From Lepidodermella squamata (lineage: Eukaryota; Animalia; Gastrotricha), in contig JBLDXI010000007.1 of the NCBI GenBank assembly GCA_047495785.1, positions 2,108,001-2,172,000 of the forward strand: a DNA stretch of 64,000 nucleotides, written 5' to 3'. The notes beneath the pieces were generated by a model, which did not search any database, was not told where the DNA came from, and saw only the letters and a program-made list of their open reading frames with translations. The translations under genes and the position numbers were made by a program. Below are positions 1 to 48,772 of the stretch, in pieces. The first letter of the stretch is position 1; each line of letters begins with the position of its first letter.

Positions 1-1814
1 GCGCAGCGGTACCCTTGCACATTTTACTTGAATACAAAGGCTATTTCGCAAAATTGCTCTTCTATTGTTGCCCAAAATCAAAAGTTGTTGAAACAGCAGC
101 TTTTTCGGCGCCGTTGATTTCCCAAAATTCCTATGCGGCACGGTATGGAGAAATAAATTTGGATTTTCTCGATGAAGTCTCTGAATCCAATTCGAAAATC
201 GGTGGGAATTCGACTCCTACTTCAGAAATCGAGGGGAATCCGACTACTTCAGGTTAGTTCAAGCTTCAAGCTATTATTCGCTGAGAGTACGTTGGTTTTT
301 TCCGTACCATTATAGCGTTATATAAATTATTTGAAATCAGGCATTCGAATACTCATGAATTTTTCTTTGGATTGTATTTTTACTACCTACTTACTGCAAG
401 CGTCGTCTCAACGCTCAACCCCTCTTTCAAATATATATTTTTTCAGATGGACTAGTTTCCTGCATTCAAAGTCCCAAAGTGAGCACTGATGTGACTACTG
501 ACCCCTCTGCTGTGCGAATCGCACCTCACGCCAGTCGATCATTCAAGATTGTCGTGAAATCCAAACCCTCATCGGAACCTCAGAAGTTGATCTGTCAGGC
601 ATGCGGGAAGATTTACAAAAAGAAAGCCTGGCTTGCGAAACACGAGGCGAAACACGCTGCCCTGAACAAAAATCTGATTGCGAGATTTGCGGACGAATCT
701 GACAATGAAGTCGATAAAAGTTTTCGAGAAAGACTGCAGCAAATGACGTTTGAGACAAAAAATCCACCTCCTGTTGAACCGAATGATATTTTAAACTGGG
801 CTACAACAGAGCCTCGTTTCATCGATCCAAGTGACAGTGCTGGAGCCTTCATTTGGCCGGATAATGGTGGTCGCGATAGCCTCCAAGTTGTAACCAAAGC
901 AACTGTTGCTTTAGATAGCATCGCGTTGGCTTTATTCGACGCCAAAGAGTTGTTATGCGATGGTACATTAAAGAGCTATCTGCGAGCTCATCGCGGCTCT
1001 CGTCTGCAGGACATACACAACAACAGGGCCGAGTTTGTGAAGCATACTTTCCCTGAAGTTGCTCATATTCGAGGAGACGGCTGTGTTGTTTACGACCTGG
1101 AAAGATTGTCTTTGGTTGAAGTTTGCCGAACGATCTTTCAGCGCCAAAACTGCGGATTGGGCCATGGAATTAGCCGCCTTTACAATCCGGTGTTGGTAGT
1201 CGAAAGCGCGGAAAACAACCCGTTTGTTGATATAACACCCTTGAGAATTTGATCGCACTTAAATTCCACCGATTTTTTTAGATTTCGAGAAGACGCCGCA
1301 CAGTCCCTTCAAGATTTACTCGACGGATTATTTTTGAATCGTGTGAATTCCACCAGGTAATATTTGGAAATAGTCGGTGAATAATAAATTAATTATTTAA
1401 TCATCTATTTGATCCAGAGAGCAGCAACCGCAAATCACATTTGCGACGGTTCTCTTCCCGTGCCGGTTATAGCAATTGGCATAGTGCCGCCGATCGCAAT
1501 CCCCGACGTATTCCGAGGCGAAACGATGATGCTCCAGTTCCAAGCAACTCGGTATAGCTCCTAAAGGCTAATTGGTCGCAAATTCATGAGACTTTTTTCA
1601 TTTATTAATCAGGTACCGCCTATCGTCTGTCATCGCCGAAGAAGTGGATAGCTCACGTTTGGCAGTCATAAAACCCGGCGAGAGGGGCGTTGATGTCTGC
1701 GTGCCCAATGAAAAGAGAAAAATCCTCGTCAGAGAAGACCGCGTCGAAGTCTCCGACATCCGATTTGATCTTTGGCATCCAAAGATGCTCATTTTCGCCT
1801 TAGCCAACGACTAG
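1..1814 (+). CDS. C2H2 zinc-finger protein with a possible degenerate USP/USPL1-like C-terminal domain; multi-exon, 5' end probably outside the window
   Basis: The exon ending at 252 (G|gttagt) splices in phase to the acceptor at 447. The ORF contains CQACGKIYKKKAWLAKHEAKH (CX2C-X12-HX3H). Further exons lie at ~1282-1356, ~1418-1551 and 1613-1814 (ending YRLSSVIA...PKMLIFALAND*). Internal splice choices are uncertain. Confidence 0.6.
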
Positions 1815-5215: not shown

Positions 5216-6565
5216 TTAAATTGCATTGGCGGCAATCCAATCTAAGTGCGATGCCACACGGGTCTGAATGGTGTAGCCGGCGTAATTGCAGGCCATGGTG
5301 CTAATCGAAGTGATGCCACACAGCTTGTAATAGCCCTGCGAGTATGACATGACAGGGGCGCCAGAATCGCCTTGACACGCCGATACACCCGCATTTTCGT
5401 ATCCTTTTTAAAATAACTCGATTAGCAACGTTTTTACGCGGAAATAATCGCCATGCCTGTGCACATAATTGAGTCGGCTATCGCGAGTTTATATGGAGTT
5501 TGACAAGCCGCTTTGCCAACAATCGGCGTTGTGGTGTATCTCAGCACATGGGAAAAAGCCCCTTCGCGATTTGTGCGACCCCACCCTGACATTCAAAATC
5601 AAACAAGTAAAAATTCAAACCAAACGAGTTGATATTTACCAGCAGTCACAGCTGCCGTACCAACACTGCAATCGTCGGAAGCTGATGTTGGGAGGCAGAT
5701 TTTCTGAACAGCCCAGGTCGTGAAGTTCAGTGCAGCTGTAAAAACGTTTTTTTTTAATTAGTTTTTACAAATTATTGTTAGTAAATTTGAAAGTGAAACG
5801 AGTTATTGCAAAACGTACCTGACAATTTAACAAGTCCGATATCATTCACAAAATCGATACCGTATGAAGCGTGATACTTCCATGATGCAGCTTGTACCGT
5901 GAATTCGCCATCGGAGGCAGTTGTATTGTGTTCGGCGATGGTCACAGTAATGGACCTTGAAGAAAATATAAACTATATTGAAAGCTCTGGGGTTAGTTGC
6001 TATTCGGAGTTACTGGATATAATTGCCGAGGCAATGGGCTGCAGTTAACACATATCTAAGCGGAAGAACGAATATTATCGAGTCGAAAATTACCGTATTT
6101 CATCGATTAATAGCCTCCCTCGAACAATTGTGTTTTCGGAATTTTCGAGATTTCGGAATTTTTTAGCAATGGCTATTATTTGATGAAATACGGTAATTAG
6201 AAAGGGAAGTTGCTTGCCTTTCGCTTATGATACTGCCGGTGCAATAGCTTGTTTGCTTCAACCCTTGTACGGTCTCAGCAATGCTCAGACGCACAGCCCT
6301 GTTGCATACGTGAGCTACAGCAAAGAAGCGCTAATTTAAAAAATGCATACCATGGGAATTGATTCTGCTGAGCGACCGAGCCTCCGACGATACCGGCACC
6401 GGGGGCATCTCGACTGTTGTAGTACCTCGAATGGCCGCACGTTTTTGAAACAGTTGTCGGCGGGGGTGTCGATGGAACCAGCTGATCCATGACGGTTTTT
6501 ATCCAAGGCAGGGCCATATTGGCAACAGCAGCAGCAAAGCTGCCGCAGTAGCGCCGGGGTGAACC
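5216..6565 (-). CDS. Trypsin-family (S1) serine protease, multi-exon; preceded by the tail of a probable second, degenerate protease-like domain; 5' end unresolved (to ~6910)
   Basis: The spliced translation gives IVGGSVAQQNQFPW|AVRL...YCTGSIISER|YVLTAAHC...NDIGLVKL...KICLP...GWG...MCTG|YENAGVSACQGDSGAP...TRVASHLDWIAANAI*. The His/Asp/Ser triad is intact, with Ser at the S1-pocket position. Two introns need GC donors (6217 and 5456). Confidence 0.9.
6093..6193. mobile_element. Tc1/mariner(pogo)-type MITE, 101 bp, in a protease intron
   Basis: TIRs ccgtatttcatcgattaatagcc / ggctattatttgatgaaatacgg, flanked by TA at 6091-6092 and 6194-6195. Confidence 0.8.
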
Positions 6566-7096: not shown

Positions 7097-7279
7097 TACC
7101 GTAGTTCTAAGCCACGACTACGGTAGAGCTCGGCGGCACGGTAATTCTTCAGCACGGTGCCGTAGTTTTAACTTGAACATTTTCTTCTATAGAAATGAAA
7201 GTTTCCAGAAACTGTCTTGTTTGAAACTAACGCGAAAAACAATTCAGGGACACCTTCAAAAGACTAGCATGTCCGGGAC

Positions 7280-7350
7280 TGCACGATAGCTCAGTTGATA
7301 AGGTGCCTGGCTTCGAGTGTTGAATTGAGGGTTCAAATCTCATCTGCTAC
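7280..7350 (+). pseudogene. tRNA-Arg(TCG)-derived remnant or SINE head
   Basis: A-box TAGCTCAGTTGA, GATAAGGTGCCTGGCTTCG (resembling eukaryotic tRNA-Arg GATAAGGCGTCTGACTTCG), B-box GGTTCAAATC and T6 at 7356-7361. The acceptor and anticodon stems do not pair, so this is not a functional tRNA. Confidence 0.65.
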
Positions 7351-7499
7351 TGTCATTTTTTCATTCTGTCCACCTACGATATCGTGCTAAATGGCAACGT
7401 GATCTGCGATTGAATATTAAATTTTCTGAGGTTCTTTAATTGATAATATTTACTCGACGCTTCCCATCGCGCCACAGCTTTGAGGAAGTTTACTGGAGT

Positions 7500-8180
7500 A
7501 TGGCTACACCAGCGAAGAAGCCATTTGGAATGACTGTCGAAGAGCGAGCGAAGAAGCTGCGGGTCGACGATCTTACGGTCGATCAAGTTGCTCTCGTCAT
7601 GCAGCTAATCCAGCAGTTACGCTCGGAGAATGCTGACACCGTTCCGTCGTCTCCCTGCCCGCCGACTGGGCAGTCCCCTCCTCACCTGTCTTCGTTCGGT
7701 GACCTTCAGATGTCTGTTGACAGTCCACCGTCCTCCCCACCCCCGTCGTCAAGTGGGGCGTCGAACCAGCCGTGGCAGCAAGCGTCGCCCAAGCGTAAAG
7801 TGGCGCGCAAGGAAGACCCGCCGCCGCCGCCGCCCCCGACACGTACATCTGCTCCCCACCCGTCTATTGGACCTCAAGAGGCGCCTGTCAACTACAAGGT
7901 CGTGATAATCGACCGCGTCACTGGCATGACTCGTGGAGAGCTCGAGCCAGAGTTGGTCCGCGTTGCGCCATGGCTGGCGCCCGTCGCTGTCGATGTCATG
8001 AGCAGCGGCGGCCTCCGCGTGAAGTGCGCCACTGCGACGGACGCTGACAAGCTACTCAAGCGTGCCGGCTTCCCTAAGGGTGCGTTTCGCGACTCAGACT
8101 TCCGCATTCACTATCCGGGCCGGCCTGACCCGACTGTGACCGAATCAGATCGCATTTTGAAAGACAAACGCTCGGCCATA
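7500..8180 (+). CDS. LINE ORF1 (gag-like), N-terminal part, broken by the insertion
   Basis: ATG at 7500 begins a Pro-rich ORF ending KDKRSAI. It is in the same frame as 11874-12674, and joining the two gives KRSAI-YLNRLP (RNP2-like). Confidence 0.8.
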
Positions 8181-8699
8181 TGATACCGCCAAATCTCGTC
8201 TCCACTCGCCTACCGGCTCGTTCCGCCTCGATTTCACTCGTTTCATTCGTTTTACTCGATCTATATTTCGTGCTTCACTCAAATATAGATTCCTATTCAT
8301 GTTATATCATACAAATATCGAATTGTCAAAGCTACTCGACCTATATTTCTGGCGACAATTCGGCGACAATATTTGTTAGTATTGTTAAAAGAACCATTTC
8401 GAACATTTTCGCTTTTTATTGGGTAAGATGGTGCATGTAGCTCTGGTAATATAGCCTTTGCGTTATTTGTTGCGAAGTCAATTATACCTTTATTCATATA
8501 ATATTATCAACATATTTATGATAGGTCTTTGGAATTCTCCATTCAAGCCTGGCGAGTAGTCCCGTATAACTATAATTTCCAGTATTATTAAACAACGATT
8601 CGTTGAAATAGTCGATATTTAATAGAAATTAGTCTAATCGAAACATTTCACCGACTAATTATCATCGTCCAGCATTCACCTAGTTAATAATTTTCTGGC

Positions 8700-10642
8700 T
8701 TATGGAAAAAGCCGTTTCCATAAAGGAGACGATCTCATCTTATCCATTAAAGCTTTGTCTACCTCTTTTTGTACATCCCCAATTATATGATCTATACTTG
8801 TGATTGGCTTTGGGTTGGAAGTTGCTAATTGCAGGATTTTCTCAATCAAATATTTACGCATGGTTACAACACGGGAAATGTATCTTCGTTTATACGTATC
8901 CTGATCAGACTTATCGAGCTCAATGTTCTGAATTATTTGTTCGTATAAATCCTGGTCGAAACACCCAAATCTGGCGAAGCCTTTGCGACAATATTTTACG
9001 ATTTGTGACAATTCCTCAGATTTCTCCCACTCGTCAAGCTTCCCCGAAGGATACTGGTCGCAGTGCGTGAGTACCATCATGCTGCATTCTGCAAGTTCAG
9101 GTCCCAAGAAGTCTCTTACTTTTTGAAACAAGTTCATGTCCATTATTTCCGTTCTTCCAGCCTCGGAAACAAACCAGACTGCATGCAGCTTAGTTATGTT
9201 GCATCGCAAGAATGTACTTATCAAGTGCAATAGACTTTCAACACTCGGCTCTGATCCATCACTGAAATATGCTTGGAAACCTGGCGTATCAATAAAGTTG
9301 ATCTGGTAACATTTATCGCGGACATTGATGGCGATTGGTGCCAAAACGGGATGTTTTGTTTGCGAGAAACCTTTTCTTGACGCGCCTATATAAGGATTTA
9401 TCAGTGTTTGAATGATTGTCGACTTTCCAACAGAGGTTTTTCCAAGAAGTAAAATATTGATTGATTGGCAATATTGTACCGTGAAATCTGGCTGGTGGTG
9501 ATCGGACATTGCCGCGATTTGTTTGGTTATGTATTGTTTTCCAATCACCTGATCCATTGAAGGTCTTACAATAGGATCACGTACCAATAACTCCTTAACA
9601 ATGAATTCTTTAAGTTCATCGCTAACATTAGCCGCAATCGGGGTAATGGGGTCACTCCGAATGTTACGAATCAGGCGCGGCACATCGAAAACGCCTCGTG
9701 CTGGTGGAAACTAAAGCAAAGAGCTGAAAAATTCGTGAGTAGTAAGAAAGAACAAAACTTACAGGCAGTGATAAAGCTGCTATTTCGTACACAACTACAC
9801 CGTAACTCCAAACTTCGCATTTTTCATCATATGTGATGTTTCCAGATTCCAAGGTCACTAGCTCTGGTGAGAAATGTGTGTATGTTCCAACTAAACCTTC
9901 AACCTGCTCACTTCGCATAAAAAGGAGTATAAAAAGGTACTGGAACTAAGTAAACACCTTGAATAACAGACCTGTCGAACGATTTAGCAATGCCGAAATC
10001 TCCCAATTTTATCGACCGGTTCTCCATTAAGAAGATATTCTGAAGGTCATAGTTTAAGGTTTAACAAACTAACACAAAATCCACTAACCTCTGTTTTGAC
10101 GTCACGGTGTAGGATGCGCTTACTGTGTAAATGCTTCAGAGCGACGGCAAGTTGAGCTGCCCATTTCGCGATGTCGCTTTCTGAGAAGGGCTTTCGACTT
10201 TGCTGTTCGATGGCGTCTTTTAAAGTACCATTTTTGAAAAACTCCATTAATATATGAAGCGTCGTGCACTCTTATTTTTCGAAAGTGATGTAGGAAAAGG
10301 TAGGTCATAAGCTTACAAATCAGTTTTACCAATGAAGTGACCAAAAACGTGTACCACGTACTCATGGGGAAGGACAGACATCATTTTAACTGCCTGAAAA
10401 TGATTATATGCTACATACAGAAAACATGTATATGTGATGAGACGATTGTTTACCTCTTTGCAAACCATATCTTTAACCTCTTGCTGTGAAAATTTAGTAA
10501 GATCAACTTTTTTTAGCGCAAGAGTAATTCCATCCCTCTTGCTTTTGACCATCCACACTTCTGTAGCTGCTCCAAAGCCTCCTTTTCTGATCTTACGGAT
10601 AGTTTCATACTCGTTAGAACTCCAGTCGGAAGAAGAATTCAT
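8700..10642 (-). CDS. NEK-like Ser/Thr kinase fused to a C-terminal AIG1/GIMAP-like GTPase; 6 exons
   Basis: Five GT-AG introns give a continuous frame. Kinase motifs: KGGFG, ALKKV, HFIECTTLHILMEF, HRDVKTENIF, KLGDFG, GTYTHFSPE, EVWSYGVVVYE, RDPIVRPS. GTPase motifs: GKTSVGKS (G1), SQT (G2), DTPG (G3), THCD (G4), followed by a helical tail. Confidence 0.88.
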
Positions 10643-10805
10643 GATTGGAACAGTCAAATGAAAGGAAACAGGAAGAAATCTCTTTATTGCACTCTCAAAG
10701 CACCTCTTATTAATACCCTACCATTTGCACAGCATATTTCTTTCGTTTAGTAAAGTTCTTATGAAAGTGTCTTATCTATTACGAAAGTTGCTATCCAACT
10801 GATTA

Positions 10806-11300
10806 CAGTGCTCTCTCGATATAAGCAACCCCGATAAGAGCTACTCGCTACTAGCAACTTTTCCTGGATCCCGTTGCTTTTATTTGTTAAAAAAATCTTT
10901 TTCGACAAATTAAAATTTTGTACATGATAATTTTTAATTTACATGAAGAATTTGTTTACGTTAGCAACAGAATTGTAACGCTGCTCCTGGCGTTTGTGAT
11001 TTTTCAGTTGGACGGCGGCGCGCCGTGATCACTTGATCTCCATCTTTACAGATCGATGTTTTTTATCTCAGCACTGGCTTCAATTTTGAGATCGTGCGCG
11101 CGTTTGCTCTCTCGTATTTTTTCATTCACAAACACTACACACTACTATACTAGCCAATGATGAGATTTTTTGAAGAATGATAGTGATTACGCTACGGTTC
11201 AGAAAAAATGATTTAAATAGCGATCAAAAGCAAACCGCTGATTATCTACTTTTTGACCAAAGAGTTGAGAACAGATATTCAAGCTTGTTGCATTCCATCA
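10806..11300 (+). mobile_element. Truncated pogo/Tigger-like element remnant
   Basis: TA|CAGTGCTCTCTCGATATAAGCAAC resembles a Tigger-type TIR start. No matching right TIR was found, so the right boundary is a guess. Confidence 0.35.
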
Positions 11301-11873
11301 AAGCACATCACGAGGAATTGCCGTGAATCTGTTTTAATTCAATAGAAATGTGAAAAAGTTAGGATGCAGCTTCGGCTCAAGATTCAAGCAAACTTCCAAC
11401 AAGATTTCAAAGCAAGTTTCGCCCCGAGTCCTTCAGTTTTTGTCACGGATTTATGAGAAAAGATGCGTTTCAATCTTGGATAGATTTAGGATCACATGCT
11501 CCTAGCCGAATTTTACCTAACATTGTTCGCTTATCCGCTAGTGTATCCATGGTTTGTCTTATTTGAACCTGATAGAATTGCTAAATTTAATTCTAATGAA
11601 GGCTTTCAAGCTTTGTTAACCTTCAAATTTCCAATTTTGGATCAATTAAATTAAAATGTCGCATTCCAATTAAATGGCTCTCAAATATCGCCGGGTAAAT
11701 TCGCGTAACCGAAGTGTCCTGATCATAAATGAAGAAATTATTCGATGAAATATTTTTCAGAAAATGTGAGAAAAAATGTCAGCCAGCTTAAAATACAATT
11801 GGAGTTCAAATGATCAAACTTTGCATATCAAATACTATCTACCACATCGAAAATAATTACATTAACACCAGAT

Positions 11874-12674
11874 TATCTGAACCGCCTGCCCTCCTGTTAC
11901 ACTGGCGCTACTCTGCGCCCACTTTTCCGGCCCGAGTATATCGAGGAAATCCGCGAGATTCCCCCGCTTCCTGGTAAGCAGACGTCGCCGATGGTGCTCG
12001 TCTTTCGAACGGCTGAGCATTACGAGGATGCCATGGCTAACGGTGTCAAGTTTCTGAATCGTCGCATTAAAGTCCACAAGTTGAAAAGCAAGGCTCTCCC
12101 GCCTACCTGTCTGAAGTGCGCCGCTTACGGCCATGTCGCTGTCGATTGTTCTCCGGACACCACGCAACGCTGCAGCCGCTGTGCTGCGACTGATCACACG
12201 ATTTCCACCTGTCTCGCTGAGCCTGAAGATCGTCGTTGCCCCCACTGCAGTGGCGGCGGTGAGCCTCATCATTCTGGTTCGTGGCGGGGCTGCCCTGCGT
12301 TCAAGACCGCCCAGGCTGACGAGGTAGCCCGTCGCCGTGCCATCGCCGTCGCCCGTGAAGCGAAAGCCGCCGAACGTGAAAAGCGTCGTCAACAAGCGAA
12401 GGTCCCCGAGCACCTGCGGGGTGGCCCCACGCACTTTCTCTCCACTCGTGACTTTGTCGGCGGACCAACGCCTGCTCCGTGGTCATCCCCTTCTCCTGCA
12501 CTCCGCGGTCACTTTCTGTCGCCTGATGGCGCCCGGCTCTTTAGTCTTATGGAAGAGCGGTTCCAGCGTATGGAAGCCGCTTTCGAGCGCCGACTCGACA
12601 CTGTCGGCCGCTTATTCGACCGGCTCTTCGCCTCCCCGCTGCCGCCACAAACCAGCTCGACTCGTAATGGCTAA
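11874..12674 (+). CDS. LINE ORF1 (gag-like), C-terminal part with three zinc knuckles
   Basis: CLKCAAYGHVAVDC, CSRCAATDHTISTC and CPHCSGGGEPHHSGSWRGC. The stop overlaps the ORF2 start by 8 nt. Confidence 0.9.
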   Translation, partial: YLNRLPSCYTGATLRPLFRPEYIEEIREIPPLPGKQTSPMVLVFRTAEHYEDAMANGVKFLNRRIKVHKLKSKALPPTCLKCAAYGHVAVDCSPDTTQRCSRCAATDHTISTCLAEPEDRRCPHCSGGGEPHHSGSWRGCPAFKTAQADEVARRRAIAVAREAKAAEREKRRQQAKVPEHLRGGPTHFLSTRDFVGGPTPAPWSSPSPALRGHFLSPDGARLFSLMEERFQRMEAAFERRLDTVGRLFDRLFASPLPPQTSSTRNG

Positions 12675-15536
12675 TACGCTGCGTACGCTACTACAATGGA
12701 ATCCGTGCGGCCTCCCCGGCAAGGAAGCTGAAACTTGTCAACAGCTAGAGACTTATAAACCCTTTGCTCTTTTCATAAGTGAATCCTTTCTTTTCTCTCT
12801 TTTGCGTGTAACCTCTAGGGATTATGCAATTTTTCGTTGTGATCGGGTACAGGACTCCGAGGATCTGTTGCTCAACGGCGCTCGTGGCGGCGCTGCTCTG
12901 TTTGTTCGGGAGGGCGCTCTCGTGGTCGCCGAGCGGCGGCTGGCTCTGACTGGTCGCAAGCTTAGTGAGTGGCTCGCTTTGGATGCTGTCCCTTTCGCTG
13001 GCTCGTCTGTTGTTCGTCTTCTTACCGGCTATTGTCCGCCGACGTCGTCCTTGGATCTCAGCTTCCTGGAAACCGAGTTCGCTGGGGCCTCCGCCTCCGG
13101 CCTCCCATCTTTAGCGGGGATCTCAATGGCAAGTCTCCACTGTGGGGTTCACAGTCCCACGATTTATGGAACCCTCACGGCGATTCCGTACATCATTTCG
13201 TCACCCGTCTCGGTCTGACTGTTCTCTCCTCGCCTCCCACGCACCTGTCGAAAGCTCACAAGACCCTGTCTACGCTCGATATCTGGATTGTCAACGACGC
13301 GGCGCTTCGCCTTCTCGATGGTGGCGTGTCTGTTGGCGACCGACTTAGCAGCGATCACTTCTGCACGTCTGTCAGGGTTCGTCTTCCGTCCGGCTCTGGC
13401 CCTGCTCACGTCTACGACCTCGTGGACCCTGCTCCTCGCTACGACATCTCCAGAGCCGATCGTTTTGGATTCTCTCGTACCCTGATCCGGCTGCTGTCCG
13501 AAATCCCGCTGCCTAATGTCGGCGACCCAGTGATTCGGATCGACTCGTATCGGCGCCAGGTTGGTGCGGCAATCGCCGAATCTCGCCGTGTTCACGTCCC
13601 TCTGCTCGACCGCACTCAGTTGAGAAAAGTTTCAATGACCCGCGACATGCGTAGCCTGCTCGAAAGAAAGAGGATTCTTGAACGTGGGCTCGGCAATCGA
13701 GTTGATGCCGGGCTTGTCGATAGGATCAACGCCTTGGACGCCCAGTTCCGCGCTGCGAAAGCGGCTCAGCAATTGCGGCGGGATATCTCCAACCTGCGGT
13801 ATGTTGAAGCTCTGTCGTTCCAGCACCGCTACCGAGAGGCTTATGCCCGCCTCCGTCGTCTCGATAAGTTTCGCCCTACCCCTGTTGATCGCCTGACCTA
13901 CATGAAGCTCGATGATGGCAGTGTCCTGCCGCCTTCTACTGCCCTTGCTGATGCACTGCTTGATCATTTCGTCAAACCGATGTCGCCCTACGTCGACCCC
14001 GATGCGGACGCTGCCACTCGCCAGTGGTGGCAACAAGTCGAGGACGATGTCGTTGCAGATCCTGACCTTCGGGCTTCCGATGTGATCCGCTTGCCCGCTC
14101 TCGGCGAGTTTTCTGTCAGTCAACGGATGCTCGCTGATGCTGTTAGCCGTTTGAAGTCCTTCAAGGCCCCTGGCTTGGATGGTATTCAAAACATCTACAT
14201 GAAGTGGGGTGGCCCTGTCCTGCAAACCCACCTTCGTCGGCTGTTCAACATGTCTCTTGGCAGTCGCTACGTGCCTCAAGCGTGGAAAGAAGCGGTTGTT
14301 GTGCCTATCCCAAAGGCCGGCAAGCCGCAGAACCATGACTCGTCACAGCGTCCCATCTCCTTGCTGCCGACTGACGCCAAGCTCCTGGAGTCGATCGTGG
14401 CTCGGTGGATGACCCAGTTTCTCGAAAGTCAACACCTTCTCCCTGAGAATCAGTTTGCATTCCGTCCGCACCATTCCGCGCCCGATGTCCCAGTTCGCAT
14501 CGTTCATCGCGTCCGCGTCAACCGCTCCCTGCGCAAGAAGACTGTCGTGGCCGGCTTGGATGTTCAGGCGGCCTACGATTCCGTGTGGCACGCCGGGCTG
14601 ATCCATAAGCTGGCCCAGCTGCCTCTCCCGCGAAATTTGGTCGGCTGGCTGGCCGACTATCTTCGCGACCGTCGTCTGCAGGCTCGCGTGGCGGGCTCGC
14701 TGAGTCGTCAAGTCGTCGTCCATTGCGGGGTGCCGCAGGGTTCCCCGTTGTCGCCGCTTCTCTACATTCTGTACACCGCCGATTTGCTGTCCGCCCCAAG
14801 CGTGGGTGGCACGTTGCTGCAGGCCTACGCGGACGATCTAACTGTCGTCGGCGAGGGTGGCACGTTCCCTGCTGCTCAGCGTCGCCTCCAATTGGAGCTC
14901 ACTCGTATTTCCGACTGGGCCAAGAAATGGCGCCAGAAGTTTAATCCCGCGAAGAGCGAAGTTATGCCCTTTGGTAACGCGTCCGTTGCTGTTAGGCTCA
15001 ACGGAGCCGTAATTCCGCAAGTCGAGTCGTTACGAGTTCTCGGTGTTCACTTGGACCCTAAACTGACGTGGAAAGTTCATGTGGACAAGGTCTCTGACCG
15101 TTGCCGCAGAAATCTGGGTTTTTTCAAACATCTCATGTTCACCCCTGGGCTGTCGCGCCGCTGGCGCCGCACCCTTTACTTGACTCTGGTCCGTTCGTGC
15201 TGGTCTTATGGGACCATTTGTCTGGCTACCGCCTCGAAGCAACAGCTTAATCGTCTCGCAGTCATCCAAAATGATAGCCTGCGTGCAATGCTCCACATTC
15301 GTCGGGACGACAGGGTCCGCGTGTCGGAGTTGGAATCTCGTTGCCGCATCCCGAGCGTCCCTCGGTTTCTGGAACAGTGCCAGCGCCGTTATGTCGCCAA
15401 AGCCGCTCAGTTTGTCCTGCCGCTGCGCGAGGACCTCGAGAGCGTCCGCCTGATGGCCCGCCCCCCTCCGCGCTCGCCCTTCGTGCTGTTGAGCAACAGA
15501 CTTCCTCGTGGTCCTCTGCCCGACTTCATAGGCTAG
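12667..15536 (+). CDS. LINE ORF2: APE endonuclease + reverse transcriptase, with one frameshift at ~13105-13115
   Basis: ATG at 12667. Endonuclease motifs: LQWN, ISES, GGAALFV, GYCPP, [frameshift], GDLNG..WGS, TLDI, SDH. RT motifs: RPISLL, QFAFR, LDVQAAYDSV, GVPQGSPLSP, YADD, LGV. No RNase H is evident. Confidence 0.93.
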
Positions 15537-15926
15537 GCTGTTATTCTCTTTTCTCCCATCTTCTCTCCTATATCTTCCCTCTTTTTCTTCATCTCTTCTT
15601 TCATGTTGTTTTTTTTCCTCTTCAGGCTGCCTTGCTTTTTTATAAAATTCCTCCGTTAGCTACCGTTGTCTCCGCCATATTTTCTCCTTTTTACTCTTAC
15701 CGCAATTCTCTGTAATGTGTTTCTCTCTGCTATCGATAACTACCCTGCAACTGATAAAACCCTCGCCATCTCCCTCTCCGTCTCTTACGTGCCCCATCAA
15801 TATGATGAGCATGGATACATCTTACTCGCACGCGCCTCTTGTTCCATAGTATTATTAGAGAGTTATTTTGTGTATTTTTTATTTGGAAAGAGGACAACAA
15901 TAAAGATTTTTATGTTTTTTTTTATC

Positions 15927-15964
15927 ACTACAGTAGAACTACGGTAAGAACTACGGTAAGAACT
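15927..15964. repeat. Short tandem 12-bp repeat (agaactacggta)
   Basis: ctacagtagaactacggtaagaactacggtaagaact. The same motif occurs in both orientations at ~7097-7170, on the other side of the LINE. Confidence 0.6.
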
Positions 15965-18444: not shown

Positions 18445-21400
18445 TTATTGGTAATTGTTTAAAATCGAACAAAATTTTCTAGTTGGTCGGCACTCGAAAG
18501 CCGCCGCAAAGTCTTTATTATTCATAACGGCTCCCCTAACTCGAAGTGGAGCCGGGCTGTAAGTCGGCTCCGAAGCCGCTAAATCCGCCCAAGTTATACC
18601 AGGCGCCATAGCCGAACAATAGCCCTGCGCTTGGGCAATGAAAAACAACCTATCAAACTGGTTATCCCGATTCCGCCGCCGCTGGTACCAGCGATAGGCC
18701 ACCTGCAGGCCTACAACATCGGCAATGTCCTGCAGATATGTCCCCTGCGCGAAATTTCTATCGATTTTATACGACCCTGCGAGGGATGAGTAGAAATCGA
18801 CTATGCAAGACTTATGCTGGTAGAGTAAGCGAGGGTCGTCGCGGATGTAGAACGGCGAATTTCGGTCGAGAAATCGGGCTAAAATATGGCCGAGTTCGTG
18901 CGCAATAGCCGTCGCGACATTGCCGAACCTCACAGCGTCTAGATATTCAGGGTCAAAATTCGGCCTCTGAGCTGCCGGGTATTGAAAGACCACCGTATTA
19001 GTCGGGTTAAACATCGCAACGGCAACGTCTAACGGGCACATGGTGCCTAGTTCGAAGTTCCGACTGCCCGAGAAAACGGCCCGTAAATGTTGGCGAAAAT
19101 TAAACGCTCGAACTTGAAGTTTGTTAGTGAAATAACTAGCATTAGTAACGAAATTAAACGGTTGGTAAAATTGGTTTAGTTGCGTTTGATTGAGCGCCCA
19201 ATTAGGCGGACCGACGCGAAATGCGGTTTTGTCCAAAATTGACCTGATTTCGGACTTTGACCCAGGCGACAATAGCGGCGAGTCGGATACTGCTGTTGAA
19301 TAGCTTGCGATGATTTCGGACGCGATTTGGCGCAGTTCGTCTATATTTTGCCAGCCGTCGAACAGGTGTTTTCGGTAGATCGAGGCTACTGCGAAGGGTA
19401 GGGAGGTAGCGGTTTCGGTGAGACAGGCTTGTTGCAGCTCAGCTGTGATGTTCGGCGCATCGGTTTGGTTGATTATATCGACGTAAGGAAGGAAAGCTTT
19501 TGTGATGAGGTAGTCTTCAAGAATATCACGTCCCTGGGAAAAAAAAATAAAAAATATCATCATACTATTATGGCGCCTAATAACCTAAGTTGGGCGCGCT
19601 AAATTCGGGGTTCCAATGGGGTTCCAGCACTCAATTTCCCCAAATAAATGGTTTCCCGAGCTGAACGTTGAAGTTAACTTTGGAATCTAAACTTTTTATT
19701 GGGTATCTTGCCCAACCGATTGATGGCTGAGCCGATATCGATTTACCGTATCGAGTATCGATTTCAAAAATCAGTTATTTTTTCGATGTCACCTGACTTA
19801 TAGAAATTAACATTGAAATTGTGCCTACCTACATAATTGAGGTCATACTAGGTAATACAAAATCCAAGGGTCATTGGGTTCATCGATTTTAAAGTAGGAA
19901 TATTGAAATATTTAGACCCCTCCAGCCAAAATTGGTTCTAGATTTTCTTTTTGAGAACCTTGAAATAAAAACAAAAATCATTCATCCTTTATCATGTAAT
20001 TACAATTTCAATTTCAATTTCAAATTTTTCCTGATATTTCGGTTCAAATTTAAAAAATTCAAGAAGTTAACAAATTGAAAAAAATAATAGTTAATTAAAT
20101 TAAATTTTAATTTCTATTTTTTCCACTCACCTGTTTTGTGCTCATTTGATTTTCCATAAATTTGCACAGCCTCGTTAAATACGAGCAAAACGTAGATGTA
20201 GTGTAGAAAATCTGAATTCGCATCTCGTTATAGCCGACATTTTTAGCAAAACTGTCGATTATCGACGTCCAGTTCAACATATTGCAACATCTATTCAAAC
20301 GCACGGCGCTCGTCTCAACGTAAGACGCGTCTCGCCAGCCGCTATCCACCTCCACCAGTTGCTTCTCGAAAGTTTTAATTTTACCACGAACTCGAGAGAA
20401 ATACGGCCCTAAGAGGCGTTCGAAAAGCACGGAAACACTCTCGGCATGCTCTTCTGGCATCGCTGCGCCGCGAAATGACCCAACCGAGACGACAAACACT
20501 TGGTTTGAAGAGCCTTCTAGATTATCGACGTAAAATTTGAATAAATGATCATGGGTGTAGTAGCTTAGACGATTGATGCGTTCGTTGAGGCTTAAAATTT
20601 CGGCGCCGGTTTTCGAGCGGTAATAACTCCACCCACCGAGGTGGGCCAGGTGAGTTCGGAAACTGGCGTCATTTGACGCCCAATCACTGGCTCGGATGCA
20701 GGTATCATAAAAGGCCTTGACCTTTAGCTCGGAATCTTCGACAAATTTGGAAGGATCGCCTGTTAAAAAAATTAAAATTAAAATCAAATTTTATTAATAT
20801 TCATTTTAATAAATTTAAATGGTTCTACGACAACTGAGACCGGACAACCGAGACCAAAATATAAATAAATAATATTATTTTCGCTAACCGAGACACCGAC
20901 AACCGAGACCAAATAATTCGATTTAATAATTAATTAAATCTCGGACAACCGAGACTCCGACAACCGAGACACCGACAACTGAGACCAAATAATTATAATA
21001 AATTAAATTTTTAATAAAAGCCTAAATTGAAGCCGAATATTGAGCATATTGAGCATATTGAGACCCCAATCCAGCCCTAACCCTAACCCTAACCCTAACC
21101 CTAACCCTAAAACGTAAAGTATATGTGAGTAAGCCATTCCTTTGTAAATTTAATTTATTATAATTATTTGGTCTCAGTTGTCGGTGTCTCGGTTGTCGGA
21201 GTCTCGGTTGTCCGAGATTTAATTAATTATTAAATCGAATTATTTGGTCTCGGTTGTCGGTGTCTCGGTTAGCGAAAATAATATTATTTATTTATATTTT
21301 GGTCTCGGTTGTCCGGTCTCAGTTGTCGGAGTACGATTTAAATCGATAAAATAAAAATAGATTAAAAATTAATTTCACTGAAAATAAATTTAAATCTAAA

Positions 21401-21952: not shown

Positions 21953-22494
21953 GAAGAAATTTCGCTCTTGGTGGAAGAGATGAAAAAAATCCGGAACTTT
22001 TTAAATGTAGCGGCCCGGCTATTGTGCCTCCATCAGAAATCGGCTTATTGCGGGCGGGCGTAGATAAGGTAGAACGCGTTTGTACGTAAAAACACTGCAA
22101 AAATGGCTAGCTTTTCGTCTGCTGCTTTTGTTTGTTTATCCCAAGTTGGTTGCACGAGTGCTTGAAAGAACTAGTTGTTTATTTTTATTGTTTTATCCCA
22201 TTTTTGCGTGGTGGAAATCACAGCGTTAAGTGTGCGAAGATATCGGTTATCCCTACGTTTCGATATAAAGATAACACTAATGTATAAAAAATGAATAATT
22301 CGATCGTTATACTCATAAATTGGAAATGAAAGATTTGATCAAAATTTTGAATATGCTAATTAAGTATTAGTATAACGCAGACCAATATTTTATTGATCAT
22401 TACAGCGTCCCTTTTAAGTTGCGCAACCATTTTGTAATTTCGCAAATTTTTGGAGAAAATTAAAGTAATTTTTTGAAATTGAGCGCACTAGAAG

Positions 22495-22590
22495 GATCTC
22501 CCATACGTTATCCACGATTTTACCGAAGAAATTTAAAATTTACCGGAGAAAAACCCGATGGTAACTGGTTCGGTATTTTTTGGTTTTTAA
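22495..22590 (+). repeat. Dispersed repeat fragment; related inverted copy at ~45105-45200
   Basis: aaaacccgatggtaactggttcggta matches the reverse complement of taccgaaccagttaccatggggtttt. Flanking similarity (cgattt.a.cg.agaaat) extends the match. Confidence 0.55.
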
Positions 22591-23126
22591 CTGGTTGGAT
22601 CACATTTCTTCGGATTTCTTTAACCCCATTCACAAGAAACATATTTGATTACTATTCTTATGGTGTTTTGGATTATCCTAAAGTTTTTTGGCCATGAGAT
22701 ATGACTTTGCCTCTCATTTTAGAGTTTCTGATCCCTTTTCCCCGTATTTTTTGTTTGCGTTAGGTACTTGTAGGTGGGATTGTGATTTAACAAGGCCTCT
22801 CTTCTACCGTACATTTTACCTCAATTTTTCTTTCGTTTTTCATCATTCAGCATTCATCATTACCAAGTATGCAACAATATCAAGCATTGTTTCCTAAACA
22901 AGTGGCCTGGGAATAATTTGCATAGAATAAGGAATAGAATCCACCCTAAATCGATATATACCAGCACCGCGTTATTAATATTTAAAACTCGCATCGACAC
23001 TTCATTATTAAGATGAGCTCGCAAAGAGACTTTCCCTCACACTCGTGCCGCGTAAATAATCGACAATGCCGGCTGCATCTCTAAAGGACAATTTCCTATA
23101 GTAATTTTCATTCACTGCCGACAAAC

Positions 23127-24703
23127 ATGAAAATTCTCACATTTTTGCCGAGGAATTTTCGCCAACCTTCTTTCTTTTCAATATTCCTGATTGCAGGTGT
23201 TTTCGTCGAGATTGCCGTCATTTTCCTATACTACTCGAGTGTGAAGACTCGAAACAATCTAGCCATCACCTTGAACCAACACCTTCCAAATGTCTTGAGA
23301 AGTAACCCAGGCAGCGCTGAGGAGGCCTTTAGAACCTGCCAATCCGCAAAGTTGTGGTGGTCCCAGCGATTTTTCCGAACTAAACGAGATAAGGACTCAA
23401 GCCCTGTGAGAGACTTTTCGAAAAATCCTATTAGAATAGGCGGCTCTAATTTCGACGAATCTTCCCTAATCAACAACTGCCCAGTTCCTTGCATTCACTA
23501 CCCACCAGAATCAAAGTTGAGCGACGAAGATAAGGGCATTTATTTCGACGCTAGTTTCGTGGAAGAACCCGGAATTGCTCGGGAAAAGCCTTACCTAGGC
23601 CTATCTGTCCTCCGAACCATGGAATCGAGTGTCTACTGCGAAAAATCTCGGTTAAAAGAGGCGAAATCTGCTTTTGACCTAGTTATGACGCCTAGACTTG
23701 ACAGCGTGTCCCTTACTTTTCATGGGAACTCTACGATATAATGAAGCCACCTCAAGAAAAAACTGCCGAGGCCCTGTCGTCAATTGTTGTCTCCAACTGC
23801 GAATCTCGCAACTTCAGACCAGAGGCTATTGAAGTCCTCGAGGACGAAAGCCGGCGATCTCCTGTGCCGATAGTCGAGGTCTATGGCTTATGTGGGCCTA
23901 ACCAAAAGCGGCTGGACTCTGACAAATTGGCAATCATGGGCAAGTACAAGTTCCATTTGGCCTTTGAAAACTCGAACGATATTGATTACGTAACTGAGAA
24001 GTTTTACCAAAGTCTAGCTGAAGGGACTGTACCTGTTGTCATCGGAGCTCCTAACATTCGCCTATTTCAACCCTCGAATAACTCAATTCTAGTCATCGAA
24101 ACCCTGGCTGAGGTCTTAAATATTGCGGATAAGATGCAACAACTCTCCGCTGATGAGAATGAGTATCAAAAATTGCTGGCGTGGAAGAAAACTGGTCCTT
24201 CGCAACAGTTCAAGGCCCTGGTTGATCTATCAGTGGTCCATTCAAGCTGCAGACTATGTATCAAAATTGCAGACCGTATCAGAGGTTTGGAGAGGGCAAA
24301 GTCGAAACAGCCAGAAGTCTGTAACTGCCAGCTTAACTCAACAACAATTGTCTTCCGGTTTCAAGTCCGAGAACGTGGCAGATTCAACTTCAGCGAAGGT
24401 TTCATCTACAGCTCAGAATTAACCTATCACCGCCTTAATCAATCGATTTTCGAGGCGGTAACTAAGGGCAAGGAGTACTGGCCGATTTGGAGTTGGGTCA
24501 GGGACGAAATTGGCCGTCGGCACCCGCAAGGAGCTTTCCCTCGTAAAAAACCGCCTACTTTCAACCTGTATCGAATCTACGAGGTCGGGACACCTCATGG
24601 TCAAGTTCTATTCGGTCGTTCGGCAATTGATTCCGACGAGAAAGTTGTTCGTCTCTTCAGCTCGAAAAAAGACTGCATCCAACTCGAAGTGATTTTTGTG
24701 TGA
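23127..24703 (+). pseudogene. Plant-type core alpha-1,3-fucosyltransferase (GT10) copy 1; intronless and frameshifted at ~23706-23711
   Basis: Type II TM, VLRTMES, [shift] PYFSWELYDIM, VSNC, YKFHLAFENSNDIDYVTEKFYQSL, VHSSCRLCI, VRERGRF, LYRIY, LEVIFV*. It is 7 nt shorter than the paralog at the shift. Confidence 0.85.
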
Positions 24704-26502: not shown

Positions 26503-29065
26503 TTAAGTATTTAGCACCATGATTACTTTGGGCGCGAAGATCACACTAAAGCATAGTCCATGGATGGCGAAGATTCCCGCAAAAAATACCGTTTGAATAG
26601 TGCCAGGATCGCTATCTTTGAAAACGGCGACAATCAAAGCGCCACAAGCTATGAAAACTATGCCAATACAGTAGGTGACAGTTCTGGTGAAATGCAAGTC
26701 GTTGATTTCGTCGAGCTCAAACTTCTTCAAAGCGAAAACAAGATACAAAGAACGCAAGAACACCAGCACGTAGCAAATGACGAAGAAACCGATGAAGCCA
26801 ACAGAGATTGTTGAACTTGCCGCTATTTCACAGCCTATTTGATAGGGTTTGTAACCCAAACTCTCATGAACGATTTGAAGATCGCCATGGCGGACAGATG
26901 TTCCTATCGGCTCGATGGCGAACCAAAGACTCATAAATGCGATTTCGATAAGAACATACATGACCACAGCAATGCAGCAACGCTTGATATTTCGGTCGAA
27001 AAATTGACGGTCTATTATTGTTTTGACTTTTGGGGCTGGAGTCATCATCATGCTACTAGCACTTTGGCTAGGCCCTCGGCTATTAGCGCTGGCCCTAGGG
27101 GAGGGTGCTGGAGCTACCCCTAAACTAGGACGAGAAGCTCCGGATTTATTGGTTGAGGCTCTGGAATTATTCAGGTTTGCAGTCAAAGTCTTCGATTTAA
27201 CACCAGTGGCGTAGGCAAGATGGAGTTTACCCAACAAAGCTGCTGCTATCATCGTAAAGCCGATGGTGAATGAGAGGGACCCTGCCATACAGTACTTACT
27301 AGCTTCGTGACTAGAGGCCCGAGGGAAGATGAAGACCGTGCATACCATCAGAATGCTACCAACAAGTACGAGGGTGCTCAACTGTACCACTGAATTCTGT
27401 ATGATAGGAGATGATCTTTTGAGTAAGAAGATGAGTACTACACCCAGGTCCATTGTGAGTAGGATTGCTGCAATAATCGATACTACCACGTCTGTCATGA
27501 ACGTCATTATCGGGGCTTTGGTAGCAAGAATCCTGAGCGAGTCGGCCGGTGCCTGGCCATCCGTAGTTCTCCATTTGATGTTGAATGGGCCATATCGAAC
27601 TAGAACAGGGCTGTAAGTCGTGTCAACAGAACCAACAGGGTAATATCGGACCCGCTTTCGATAACTAAGTTTTGTGTCATCCGACACCTGGACTTGATAC
27701 ACCGCACTAAGGGCTTTGAAGCTGTGGATGGGTAGAGTGCTTTCGAGGGTGAAGCTTTCATACTTCAGATCTTCAGTTTCACTTCTAATAATAGAACTTA
27801 TGAGGTCTCCGTTTTTTCTAAAATTTCCGCCCGAGGTCAGCCAATCCTTAATGGTTCCTAGACCAGCTTCCGCCAAACGCGCCTCCGTTCGATTAAGCAC
27901 GACTGCGCCAGAAATAACCTCACTGTAATAATGATCGCGTACAAAGTGCCACTGCGGCAGAAATTCAGCGTCAGGAATTCTAGATTTCATCATACTATCG
28001 AAAACACGCCCTGACATGCCAACGACATCTTTTGCATCGGGGAATACATCCAACCTCTTGCCGTGAGAGAAGTAGATGACAGACTTCAATATCTCAAACA
28101 AATGATCTTCCGAGCAGAATGGAGGCTTAGCAGGCGAGTCAGGGTAGAAAATCGTGTTTCCATTGAAGAGTATGACATACTGCGAGCCGTAGAGCTTGTA
28201 TTTATACAAATAGCACGAAATTACGACTGTCATGGCTGTGTTGAAAATCATGACCCGAGGGTCGAGACTAGCCAGCTCTCCAATCACTTGACCAACTGCT
28301 TCGTGAGTTGGGAGATTAGTGCCATCGAACGTTATTCGTACTACCCCAGCAACAGTCATATTTACATCTTGCATACCAAGACTTATCGAATCGTCAAGAA
28401 ACTTGCGAGTTTGTAAGGTTTCAGTCAGAAGGAAAACCCTCCTCCAATTTTGCGAGGCGAGAAAGTACGGCAGCGCATTGTAAATAGCATCAAATGACGG
28501 CATCAAGCCCATCCTGGATCTCCCAACCGATACGGCCCAAGTTGTGAAGCTTATCACATTATTAGGGCCAAATGCTTGGCCAGCGAAAGTTCCACCTGGG
28601 CAGTGAGGACCCAGCATTAGTGGAGCGTAATTCACCTTACCGTTCCACATGTTGTCAAGCATTTTAATGAGCATATCGACGCCGAAAGCGGCATTACATC
28701 TGTCATCAAACAGCTCGATGACTATTTCGTAGTTCGAGAATAGATTCGTGGAATTCATTAGGGCGTCGAGAGCGATTTGAATGCCCTCAAATGCAAGAGG
28801 TCCATGGGCGTTTTGAAGACCAGCTGAAGACCAGAAAAAGAGGGTTATCACTGTTATTGAGCGGCGTAATAAACAAGAAATTACCGATGCTTCCAATAAG
28901 AGGGATCCTAATTTGAGTCCGCGACTTGTTTGATTGCAGTGTATTAGACATATTGGCTCTCATTATTTTCGGCCATTCCGACGGAGCTTGAGCAAAAACC
29001 AGCAGTGAGCTTGAGCAAATGGTTGCCAAAACGAAGATCCTTGTTAGTTCTAGATATGATTTCAT
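26503..29065 (-). CDS. GABA-B-like class C GPCR (Venus flytrap domain + 7TM); exons 29065-28885 and 28823-26503
   Basis: Signal peptide, DDRCN..., LGPHC, WRRVFLL, seven hydrophobic helices, INDL before TM6, FAPKV at the TM7 end. No cysteine-rich domain; long Ser-rich ICL2. Confidence 0.88.
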
Positions 29066-29606
29066 TTTCTAAAAGGGATGACTGATTTTTTTATCTTGCT
29101 GATCTTCAAATAGTTCAAAAACAAACGTCGCGAAACCTGACGCTGACCTTGCGAATAATTTTTCATCTTTCTGAGGGGGCGGTGGCTTGAATAGATGGAG
29201 GCGGTATGTTGTGCCTACATCAATTCAAGGGGCTCCTATGATGTTATTTCCGTGCGAATGATAGATTTACTGCTAAACTATGTTTCACTTTCAGCCGAAT
29301 ATGGCTGGCAACAAAAAGAAACTCAACACTTGAAAAGGTTCTATATCGAAGCTAGCGAAAATTATGTTCGAAGCTGGACGCTAATAGCTTGACATCGGAG
29401 AACCTGAAGTATTCTGTTGAAGTAGGATCTGTTTGGCACGAAGGCTGAAACCGCTTCAGTGTGGACAATAGTTCTGCATTTGATTCACATTGAGGTCTTA
29501 TTTCTCGAATGCTACAAAATAGCTTCGGCACAACTGTTAAATCTCAAAATGCTCCTGATGTGCGATATTTAGCTGATATTTACTTGGCATTTTGTATTCC
29601 ACTCGG

Positions 29607-32031
29607 CTAGGATTGCAAAACTTTCACATTTTTGCGAATATTAGGTACCACTAGAACACAAACAACAATTCCACAAATTGCTAATACACCCAGAAAAATG
29701 ATGATATCCAAGGTTTCTGGATCTGCCTCCCTGAAGAACGCTAGAATAGCGGTCGCCGCCGCAATTACTACGATACCAATGCTATAGCTCACAAACCGAG
29801 TCGAATGAATGTCGCTCAGTTCGGCTGTTCTAAACTTCCGCAGACAAAACACCAAATAAAGAGTTCTCAGATATAGCAGCAAATAAGATGCGGCAAGAAA
29901 TAAAGAGAAACCGATAGAGTGATTTGACCCAGCTGAGAACCTGCAACCATATTTCACGTCTTGTAAAGCCAGGCTTGGATTAACTACCTCCAAACTGCTG
30001 TAAAACAAGTAGGTTTCATATGGATCAGCTAGAAACCAAGCGGTTGTAACAGCCACGTGCATAAAAACGTAGCCCAAAGAAAGCAGTATAGTAGGCCTCT
30101 GAGACGCTTTGATCAAGCGAATTATTTCGGGATTCGGAGGCGTTAGTTTCTTCATCTGATTGGCTAACAACGCTGGCTGTATTGAGGGTTTGCTCTTCCG
30201 CTTTTCTTTAACAACAGTTTTGCTGTGGAAGAATGCAACGACGTATGCAACATGAAGATAACCCAGTAGTCCGCAAGAAATCAAAGAAATCCCTGCAACG
30301 ATTGTCGCAGCCCCCGCCATGCAGAAAAAGTGATCATTCGCCGATCCTTTTTGAGGGAAAAAAATTATGGAAATCGCTAAAATGATTGTGCCTAATGAGG
30401 TTAGCATAGATGTAGGTAGAGTGGAATCTTGATATTTCGGTGATTTGCGTAGGACCAAGCTCAAGAGTATGGATAGAAGGAGGATGGCGACAAGAATTGA
30501 CGCCAGAGTTTTGAAAATTATGCTTCCCAAAATATTCATTGCAGGTATATTTATCTGGTAAATTGTGAATCTGTCTAGAGGTGCACGTCCATCGAAGGTC
30601 CTCCATTTCACTTTCGCTGGCCCTTGCCCGTACTTGGGAGGTTCGAATTTTGTGTCGACAGTTGCAATCGGAACTGATCTGATGCGCTGGGTGAGGGGAA
30701 TTCTAGGGTCATCAATTGTTTGAACTTGATAGAAAGCACTTAGAGCTTTCAATGTCCGTAGAGGTTGTTCAGGCTCCATAGTGAAGCTATCAAAACGCAA
30801 GTTGATGACTTGTTCACGAATGACAGAACTTATAAATGTTCCATTTTGTTTGAATTTTTCTTTGTAAGAAACCCAGTCCGCCAGGGTCTGGCCACGGTCT
30901 CTAAGTAAAGCTTCTGTTTTGTTGAGCACAACAGCAGCAGCAACGACTTCTGTGTAGTAATGGTCCCGAACAAAATGCCAGCTGGGTAGAAACTCAGCAT
31001 TAGGAATCCTTGACTTTAATAATTCGTCAAATTGCCGACCAGTCAGTCCAAGAACATCTTTTAAATCTGGATATATATCAAGCCGTTTTCCATGTGAGAA
31101 ATAAATGACCGATTGAAGAACTTCGAACAACATTTGGTCACTGCATCCCGAAGGTTTGTTAGGAGCATCGGGTAGAAAAATTGCATTACCTGGTGCCAGT
31201 ATCACGTATTGAGGACCGAAAAGATTAAAATCATATAGTGCGCATGCAACACTCACTGTCAATGCAGTATTCAAAATTATGATACGAGGGTCCATTACTG
31301 CTAACTCGCCAACAGAGCTCTGGATAACTGAGTAGCTGGGTGGTTCCGCCCCGTCAAAAATTACTGTTACGACCCCGGCTAAAGTTATATTCAGCTTTTG
31401 AAATCCTTCCGCGAGAAATTCATTGAGTTTACGACGCGTGATGAGACTGTCGGCGAAGAGAAAAACGCGTTTCCAGCCGTTGCCGTTGATGAAATACGGT
31501 AAAGCCATGAAGACTGAATCAAAAGAAGGCATCAAGCCAAACCTGGAGTCGCCAACTGCTAGAATCCAGGTCGAGAAGCTGATTACATTATTGGGGCGGA
31601 AAGCTAAGCCTGCAAAGGTTCCCCCAGTGCAATGTGGACCCAGTATCAGAGGAAAATTATGCGAACCGCCTTCTGTTATGCCATTCAGGATTCTGACGAC
31701 CATTGAGACTCCAACAGCAGAGTTGCAACGGTCATCAGTTGTATCAATTTCAAGGTTGTAACTTGTGATAAGCGTCGAGGAATTTTGAATAGCCTCAAGG
31801 GCAATTTTGATACCCTCTGTGGCCAGCTGTCCATGTTCGCCTGAAATAACACGAAAATTAAGTTGACATCCCACATTGAGAGACAAACTCACGTTGATTC
31901 GCAATCAATGGAATCCTTAGAGGAACTTGATCTAACACCTTTCCGTCATCTTTCGCAACATATTTGAAGATTTGGGCATTCAGTGGAGTTGCTAGCAGAT
32001 AAATGACTGCTATGGACGATGCAAGAATCAT
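29607..32031 (-). CDS. GABA-B-like class C GPCR, tandem paralog; exons 32031-31893 and 31840-29607
   Basis: It shares blocks with the neighbour (DDRCN, LGPHC.GGTFAG, GLMPSFD, SVIYFSHGKRLD, WHFVRDHYY), has 7 TM helices, and has the same single intron position. Confidence 0.88.
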
Positions 32032-48676: not shown

Positions 48677-48772
48677 GCGCCCCGGCACAGGCGACCCGGA
48701 AAACCAGACAACTGAGAACCCTTGCAAAGGGCTCCCGAAGCCGGTTTCCCGGGCCCGCCTGGGCCGGGGCGC
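48677..48772. repeat. GC-rich 96-nt imperfect palindrome (hairpin)
   Basis: gcgccccggcacaggcg pairs with cgcctgggccggggcgc. Inner stems are cccgg.aaacc/ggttt.ccggg and gag..ccctt/aagggctc. Confidence 0.75.

Follow-up and report, generated by a model that had tools for sequence, protein, structure and literature searches.

A complete NEK-like kinase-AIG1 gene inserted into ORF1 of a young LINE in Lepidodermella squamata, possibly as a TIR-less, Crypton-like element

The window, i.e. the whole 64-kb stretch of Lepidodermella squamata DNA that was analysed, has a GC content of ~42% and genes with small introns. Those genes include a class C GPCR, an M13 peptidase, a fucosyltransferase, an Epac-like RasGEF and an actin, and the closest relative of the window among the matches is a metagenome contig ~72% identical in exons. 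The class C GPCR genes form a tandem pair of long single ORFs (26503-31904, minus strand), and two dispersed fucosyltransferase paralogues are present at 23127-24703 and 37722-39018 (both plus strand). An ORF region at 359-1810 (plus strand) harbours a C2H2-like zinc finger and has no Pfam or NCBIfam match. Repeated sequences include two imperfect, MITE-like palindromes of 110-130 bp (6088-6198 and 48662-48788). There is also a foldback element (20780-21375), apparently within an M13 peptidase gene. Its 231-bp arms share 94% identity, and it has internal repeats of 15 nt and, at its centre, a telomere-like (CCCTAA)6 run.

A full-length non-LTR retrotransposon (LINE) spans positions ~7400-15925 on the plus strand, with ORF1, ORF2, an AATAAA signal and a T-rich tail. 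Its 5' part (7400..8180) comprises the 5'UTR and the first 234 codons of ORF1 (ATG at 7479); the start at ~7400 is approximate, as it was placed by eye against the related elements L005 and L006. This portion of ORF1 is 48-56% identical to the ORF1 of the relatives L003-L006, through the final codon before the break. The 3' part of ORF1 (11877..12674, plus strand), which carries zinc knuckles with a CCHC motif, is 33-46% identical to the relatives, and the identity begins at its third codon. ORF2 (12667..15536, plus strand) codes for an APE endonuclease and an RT and is 50-59% identical to intact related LINEs. As the original prediction had it, ORF2 contains a single frameshift (near 13101-13107), and it is free of stops. 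We thus infer that this LINE copy is young and that the insertion into it is younger still, which supports the recent date proposed for the event. The AATAAA signal and T-rich tail (15899..15925, plus strand) have the same layout as the tails of L003-L006.

Inverted copies of a 12-13-nt motif flank the LINE at 7097-7170 and 15927-15964, in tandem on the right, which suggests a small palindromic repeat as the site of LINE insertion. No TSD of the LINE itself was found. Just upstream, a decayed tRNA-like sequence followed by a T run (7286-7350) is possibly the head of a SINE; it was called neither by ARAGORN nor by Rfam. In L007 (1-10909), two different full-length LINEs of the same group are arranged head to tail. 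Both precede the same ~25-bp downstream sequence, which hints at target specificity in that lineage.

The insertion that interrupts ORF1 is real and free of deletion with respect to the LINE sequence. The two halves of ORF1 (7479-8180 and ~11877-12674) match adjoining residues of intact relatives, the break falling at residues 242|244 of L003, 371|373 of L004 and 305|307 of L005. Compared with five relatives, the halves join to the codon, which argues against an origin from unrelated LINE fragments. The original prediction was that ORF1 breaks off and resumes in the same frame. The halves are indeed contiguous, but the join proposed is one codon too long, as the stretch between RS and RLP is shorter by one residue in each of the five relatives. 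Three more bases were therefore assigned to the insert, and the alignments indicate that its length is most likely 3,696 bp (8181..11876) rather than the 3,693 bp first given. The register is uncertain by a few bases: 8180-11875 (T|T), 8181-11876 (A|C) and 8182-11877 (T|T) are equally possible, and the insert would be 8185-11880 if the exact repeat core described below marks the crossover. The A|T target proposed earlier is not established, since it rests on the join that is one codon longer than in every relative.

The insert had also been described as AT-rich. This holds relative to the LINE, but its GC content of 38% lies inside the host range of 37-45%. A horizontal origin was rejected, its composition being near the low edge of the host blocks and far above that of foreign loci. 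We also rejected the idea that the insert is spliced out as an intron, as the sole GC...AG pair at the junctions leaves ORF1 out of frame.

Within the insert we found, as predicted, a complete intron-containing gene of six exons (10642-8700, minus strand), with 553 codons, GT-AG introns of 49-61 nt and no internal stops. Exon 1 (10454..10642) contains the ATG and, as read from the sequence, the glycine loop and catalytic lysine of a protein kinase. It is followed by exon 2 (10330..10393) and by exon 3 (10089..10270), which codes for the HRD catalytic loop; the exons were searched singly, and exon 3 matched Pkinase with E=4e-13 and had NEK1 as its best PDB match. Exon 4 (9972..10039) carries the DFG motif, and exon 5 (9763..9910) the kinase activation segment with SPE and WSYG. 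Thus, the catalytic K, HRD, DFG and APE-like motifs of a NEK-like kinase are all present, with NEK as the best match. Exon 6 (8700..9710) codes for the C-terminal ~75 residues of the kinase, an AIG1/GIMAP-like GTPase and a helical tail up to the stop. Its Pfam AIG1 match has E=5e-13 and 49 bits against a cut-off of 27, its best PDB match is GIMAP1, and the AIG1 domain has the G1, G3 and G4 motifs. A structure prediction of exon 6 run without an alignment gave a pLDDT of 36. Two AATAAA signals are found downstream of the stop, at 8494-8489 and 8420-8415 (minus strand).

No close relative of the cargo was found above ~40% identity, and the window proteins checked are themselves absent from the protein collection (0 of 10). 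The AIG1 relatives, which include one of Adineta ricciae, are ~40% identical or less, and a kinase is seen in none of them. The loci L001, L002, L008 and L009 contain relatives of the cargo GTPase as single-ORF genes in AT-rich contigs, several of which occur in tandem or have RT, integrase or Tc1 sequences nearby. The architecture of the cargo is already known in kind: the Pkinase-AIG1 genes of Biomphalaria glabrata have the same domain order, with an N-terminal kinase followed by AIG1, and one exon encodes the AIG1 domain (PMC7053062). The likeness is one of domain order, whereas the nearest AIG1 relatives of the cargo are those without a kinase mentioned above. Given its link to the AIG1/GIMAP family, the cargo gene probably has a role in signalling of an immune or stress type.

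A pogo-like remnant had been proposed in the insert. An unpaired pogo-like terminal sequence (10804..10860, plus strand) is indeed present ~160 bp upstream of the cargo ATG, with a TA|CAGT terminus at 10804-10809 whose partner end is absent from the window; pogo TIRs start with CAGT after TA (PMC3845634). Further upstream, positions 11150..11550 (minus strand) make up a heavily decayed candidate transposase remnant. We take this stretch to resemble pogo transposase at the level of motifs, but its pieces between stops have no Pfam or PDB match. The pogo-like sequence appears far older than the LINE and would therefore be a passenger in the insert rather than its vehicle.

The two ends of the insert are dissimilar. 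The left 220 bp are structured, whereas the right end is featureless. An array of eight YTCG motifs spaced by 9-12 bp (8191..8270, plus strand), the densest such stretch in the window, begins ~10 bp inside the left junction and looks like a transposon end. It is accompanied by a hairpin with a 10-bp stem (8259..8290) and by a direct repeat of 17 nt (8253-8269 and 8333-8349) whose first copy overlaps that hairpin. As a lead, we presume that the left 220 bp resemble certain non-autonomous repeats in aquatic invertebrates, which are either unclassified or labelled as Cryptons. Phage matches to the hairpin motif proved to be generic hairpins without link to the insert.

The ends were compared with those of known classes of mobile elements. 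There are no TIRs above chance, the longest terminal inversion being 4 bp, and no TC...CTRR pair, both as originally predicted; CTRR is missing in every register, and TC occurs on the minus strand only, in a register that puts ORF1 out of frame. Subterminal inverted repeats of 11-18 bp are likewise missing, the best inverted match (9/10) being within the range of shuffled sequences. The insert has neither the TIRs starting with GGA nor the AAA|TTT target of Spy, and it lacks the junction TIRs and exact TSD of Tc1/pogo or other TIR vehicles. Inverted recombinase arms of 11-13 bp at a putative circle junction were found at chance level only. The insert encodes no mobilising enzyme, including a tyrosine recombinase (R-H-R-Y), and the window contains no Rep or Pif1 motif. 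No copy of either end was detected in the window, JGI metagenomes, IMG/VR, GTDB or phages; these blanks are weak, as existing relatives of the LINE likewise escaped the scan of metagenomes.

A CryptonA-derived gene with a DUF3504/QRICH1 domain lies 33 kb from the insert (44317-46330, minus strand). This gene, the sole DUF3504 gene in the window, is devoid of recombinase catalytic motifs and shares no ends with the insert. It is interrupted at ~45000-45500 by a repeat that has an inverted copy at 22430-22739 (72-76% identity), and it is probably domesticated or dead.

The original prediction held that the insert has no TSD. No exact TSD exists in any register that keeps ORF1 open, the longest duplication being 1 bp, and a TA or TAT duplication would put ORF1 out of frame. 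Nevertheless, an imperfect direct repeat of 13 bp at the junctions had been missed. Its left copy (8178..8190) and its right copy, which is LINE sequence (11875..11886), match in 11 of 13 columns. They share an exact 6-bp core, ACCGCC, at 8185-8190 and 11881-11886. The spacing of the cores, 3,696 bp, is the register predicted independently from the five LINE relatives. In simulations, both post hoc, the chance of an exact 6-bp core in register was 0.0035 and that of the gapped match 0.002. Also post hoc, no other position on either strand of the LINE ORFs matches the first 18 nt of the insert as well as the insertion site does. Beyond 13 bp the similarity between the start of the insert and the LINE is not significant. 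The 13-bp repeat is unlikely to be a decayed TSD, as two differences are too many in so young a LINE. Had the crossover taken place within the exact core, ORF1 of an otherwise stop-free LINE would contain a stop codon; hence, the crossover must sit just 5' of the similarity. The likeliest geometry would thus be a crossover just 5' of the stretch in which the donor end resembles the target.

What ORF1 contains is therefore a host-like block of 3,696 bp with a complete gene and its upstream and downstream flanks; over its first ~13 bases, this block is similar to the target sequence after the break. The interpretation that we tentatively prefer, while giving it somewhat less than an even chance, is that of a non-autonomous, TIR-less element, Crypton-like in its action, that integrated through short similarity between donor and target. 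Such a DNA element would have captured a host gene and depended for its movement on a site-specific enzyme supplied in trans, which pairs a short sequence from one end of the element with a similar target sequence. The best known analogue would be a tyrosine recombinase of Crypton type with an excised circle as its substrate, and the structured left 220 bp may represent the enzyme-binding end. We favour this reading because there is neither target loss nor an exact TSD, because the exact 6-bp repeat is in the register predicted by the relatives, because nowhere else in the LINE ORFs is the start of the insert matched as well as at the insertion site and because the densest YTCG array starts ~10 bp from the junction. 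Cryptons have direct repeats of 4-6 bp or, in animals, no terminal repeats (PMC3212892), and an active CryptonF inserts by means of a 5-bp terminus that matches a near-identical target (PMC9977147). Like the non-autonomous CryptonF and CryptonA elements (Kojima & Jurka 2011, PMC3212892; Lopez-Cortegano 2023, PMC9977147), the insert has no TIR and no true TSD and caused no target loss, and its short direct repeat may reflect similarity between donor and target. It differs from them in that no recombinase, autonomous partner or further copies were found and that the crossover is apparently beside the shared core, and we therefore call it Crypton-like in action without classing it as a Crypton. 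A limited literature search yielded no report of an animal Crypton with a complete host gene. Several observations count against a Crypton-like element: there is no second copy in the collections searched and no recombinase in the insert, the right end is without recognisable structure, the circle junction has no inverted arms, a crossover in the core implies a stop in ORF1, and the statistics are post hoc.

The same block may instead have arisen by a one-off duplication templated by repair (gap filling, SDSA or microhomology-mediated template switching) and be immobile since, an alternative that we consider a serious one without regarding it as probable. With comparable plausibility, the LINE would have suffered a staggered break or the stalling of a fork, followed by invasion of the donor through the 13-bp similarity, copying of 3.7 kb and rejoining of the other end. 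Repair accounts for the host-like composition, for a gene that comes with its flanks and an old decayed TE piece as in ordinary chromosomal DNA, and for imperfect homology at a junction without canonical element ends. Most single-copy captures within animal TEs also arise in this way, with microhomology at 67.6% of them, as shown for TIR elements (PMC8277862), and gene movement by filler DNA is known in grasses (PMC3445842). Single-copy Pack-TIRs formed by gap filling and filler-DNA movements share with the insert intron-bearing host DNA inside a TE and short homology at the breakpoint, but here the recipient is a LINE without deletion, the gene is complete and intact, and structure is seen at one of the ends. 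The absence of any loss of LINE sequence argues against repair, as does the structured array right at the junction; moreover, the left copy of the repeat carries the donor version, which needs chew-back or mismatch correction. A Helitron/Crypton-like vehicle or ectopic repair had been suggested at the outset; the Crypton-like vehicle and repair survive our analyses, but a Helitron fails on its defining ends. Rolling-circle (HUH) transduction by a Helentron/HLE2-like element or another Rep, with one true end and one read-through end, is improbable. Gene capture by Helitrons is known (PMC11417382), and the insert resembles HLE1/HLE2 (PMC11417382, PMC4067079) in its lack of a TSD, its intron-bearing gene and possibly a T|T target, which two of the possible registers would give. 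The repeat at 20.8-21.4 kb, with its internal microsatellite, resembles such non-autonomous elements, in appearance only. Nevertheless, the insert has neither TC...hairpin-CTRR ends nor subterminal inverted repeats of 11-18 bp with a 3' stem-loop, its nearest good hairpin is set back ~80 bp from the left end, the A|TC register breaks the reading frame, and the window is devoid of Rep/Pif1 motifs.

Retained introns were initially taken as proof of a DNA route. Such a route is by far the most likely, but intron retention is no strict proof: the gene is antisense to the LINE, so RNA in the LINE sense would keep the introns as well. In this orientation, an unspliced RNA antisense to the gene could conceivably have been reverse-transcribed by TPRT or template switching; the imperfect repeat would then be a damaged TSD, for which 10-13 bp is a typical length. 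We consider this route very unlikely, as neither poly(A) nor a LINE-like tail is present at the right junction, the antisense RNA would have to extend over 3.7 kb and cover both promoter and gene, and two differences in 13 bp exceed the decay expected in a LINE of that age. An artefact of assembly, or a resident gene that lies between unrelated fragments of two LINEs, would fit the fact that no donor was seen, but is scarcely credible given that the LINE halves join to the codon in five comparisons and that the junction repeat falls in the same register.

The event is thus real and unusually clean, a variant of known gene-capture processes for which the LINE supplies a precise empty site. If it was a repair event, it represents a well-dated, dispersed duplication of a whole gene with a readable junction, useful although the process is known. 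Taking the Crypton-like interpretation further, the insert might be one copy of a dispersed family of TIR-less elements, mobilised by a recombinase, that move a complete functional immune-type gene; this is rather unlikely. It is similarly doubtful that such a family is a small animal counterpart of cargo elements such as Starships (PMC10104507), the likeness being conceptual only, in recombinase-type integration and whole-gene cargo, whereas Starships are fungal, very large and carry a captain gene. Whole-gene cargo elements without canonical ends are little known outside fungi (PMC11162782). If the insert is mobile, it would be an animal element of this kind, in a class that annotation tools miss, and would provide a means by which AIG1/GIMAP genes could turn over rapidly.
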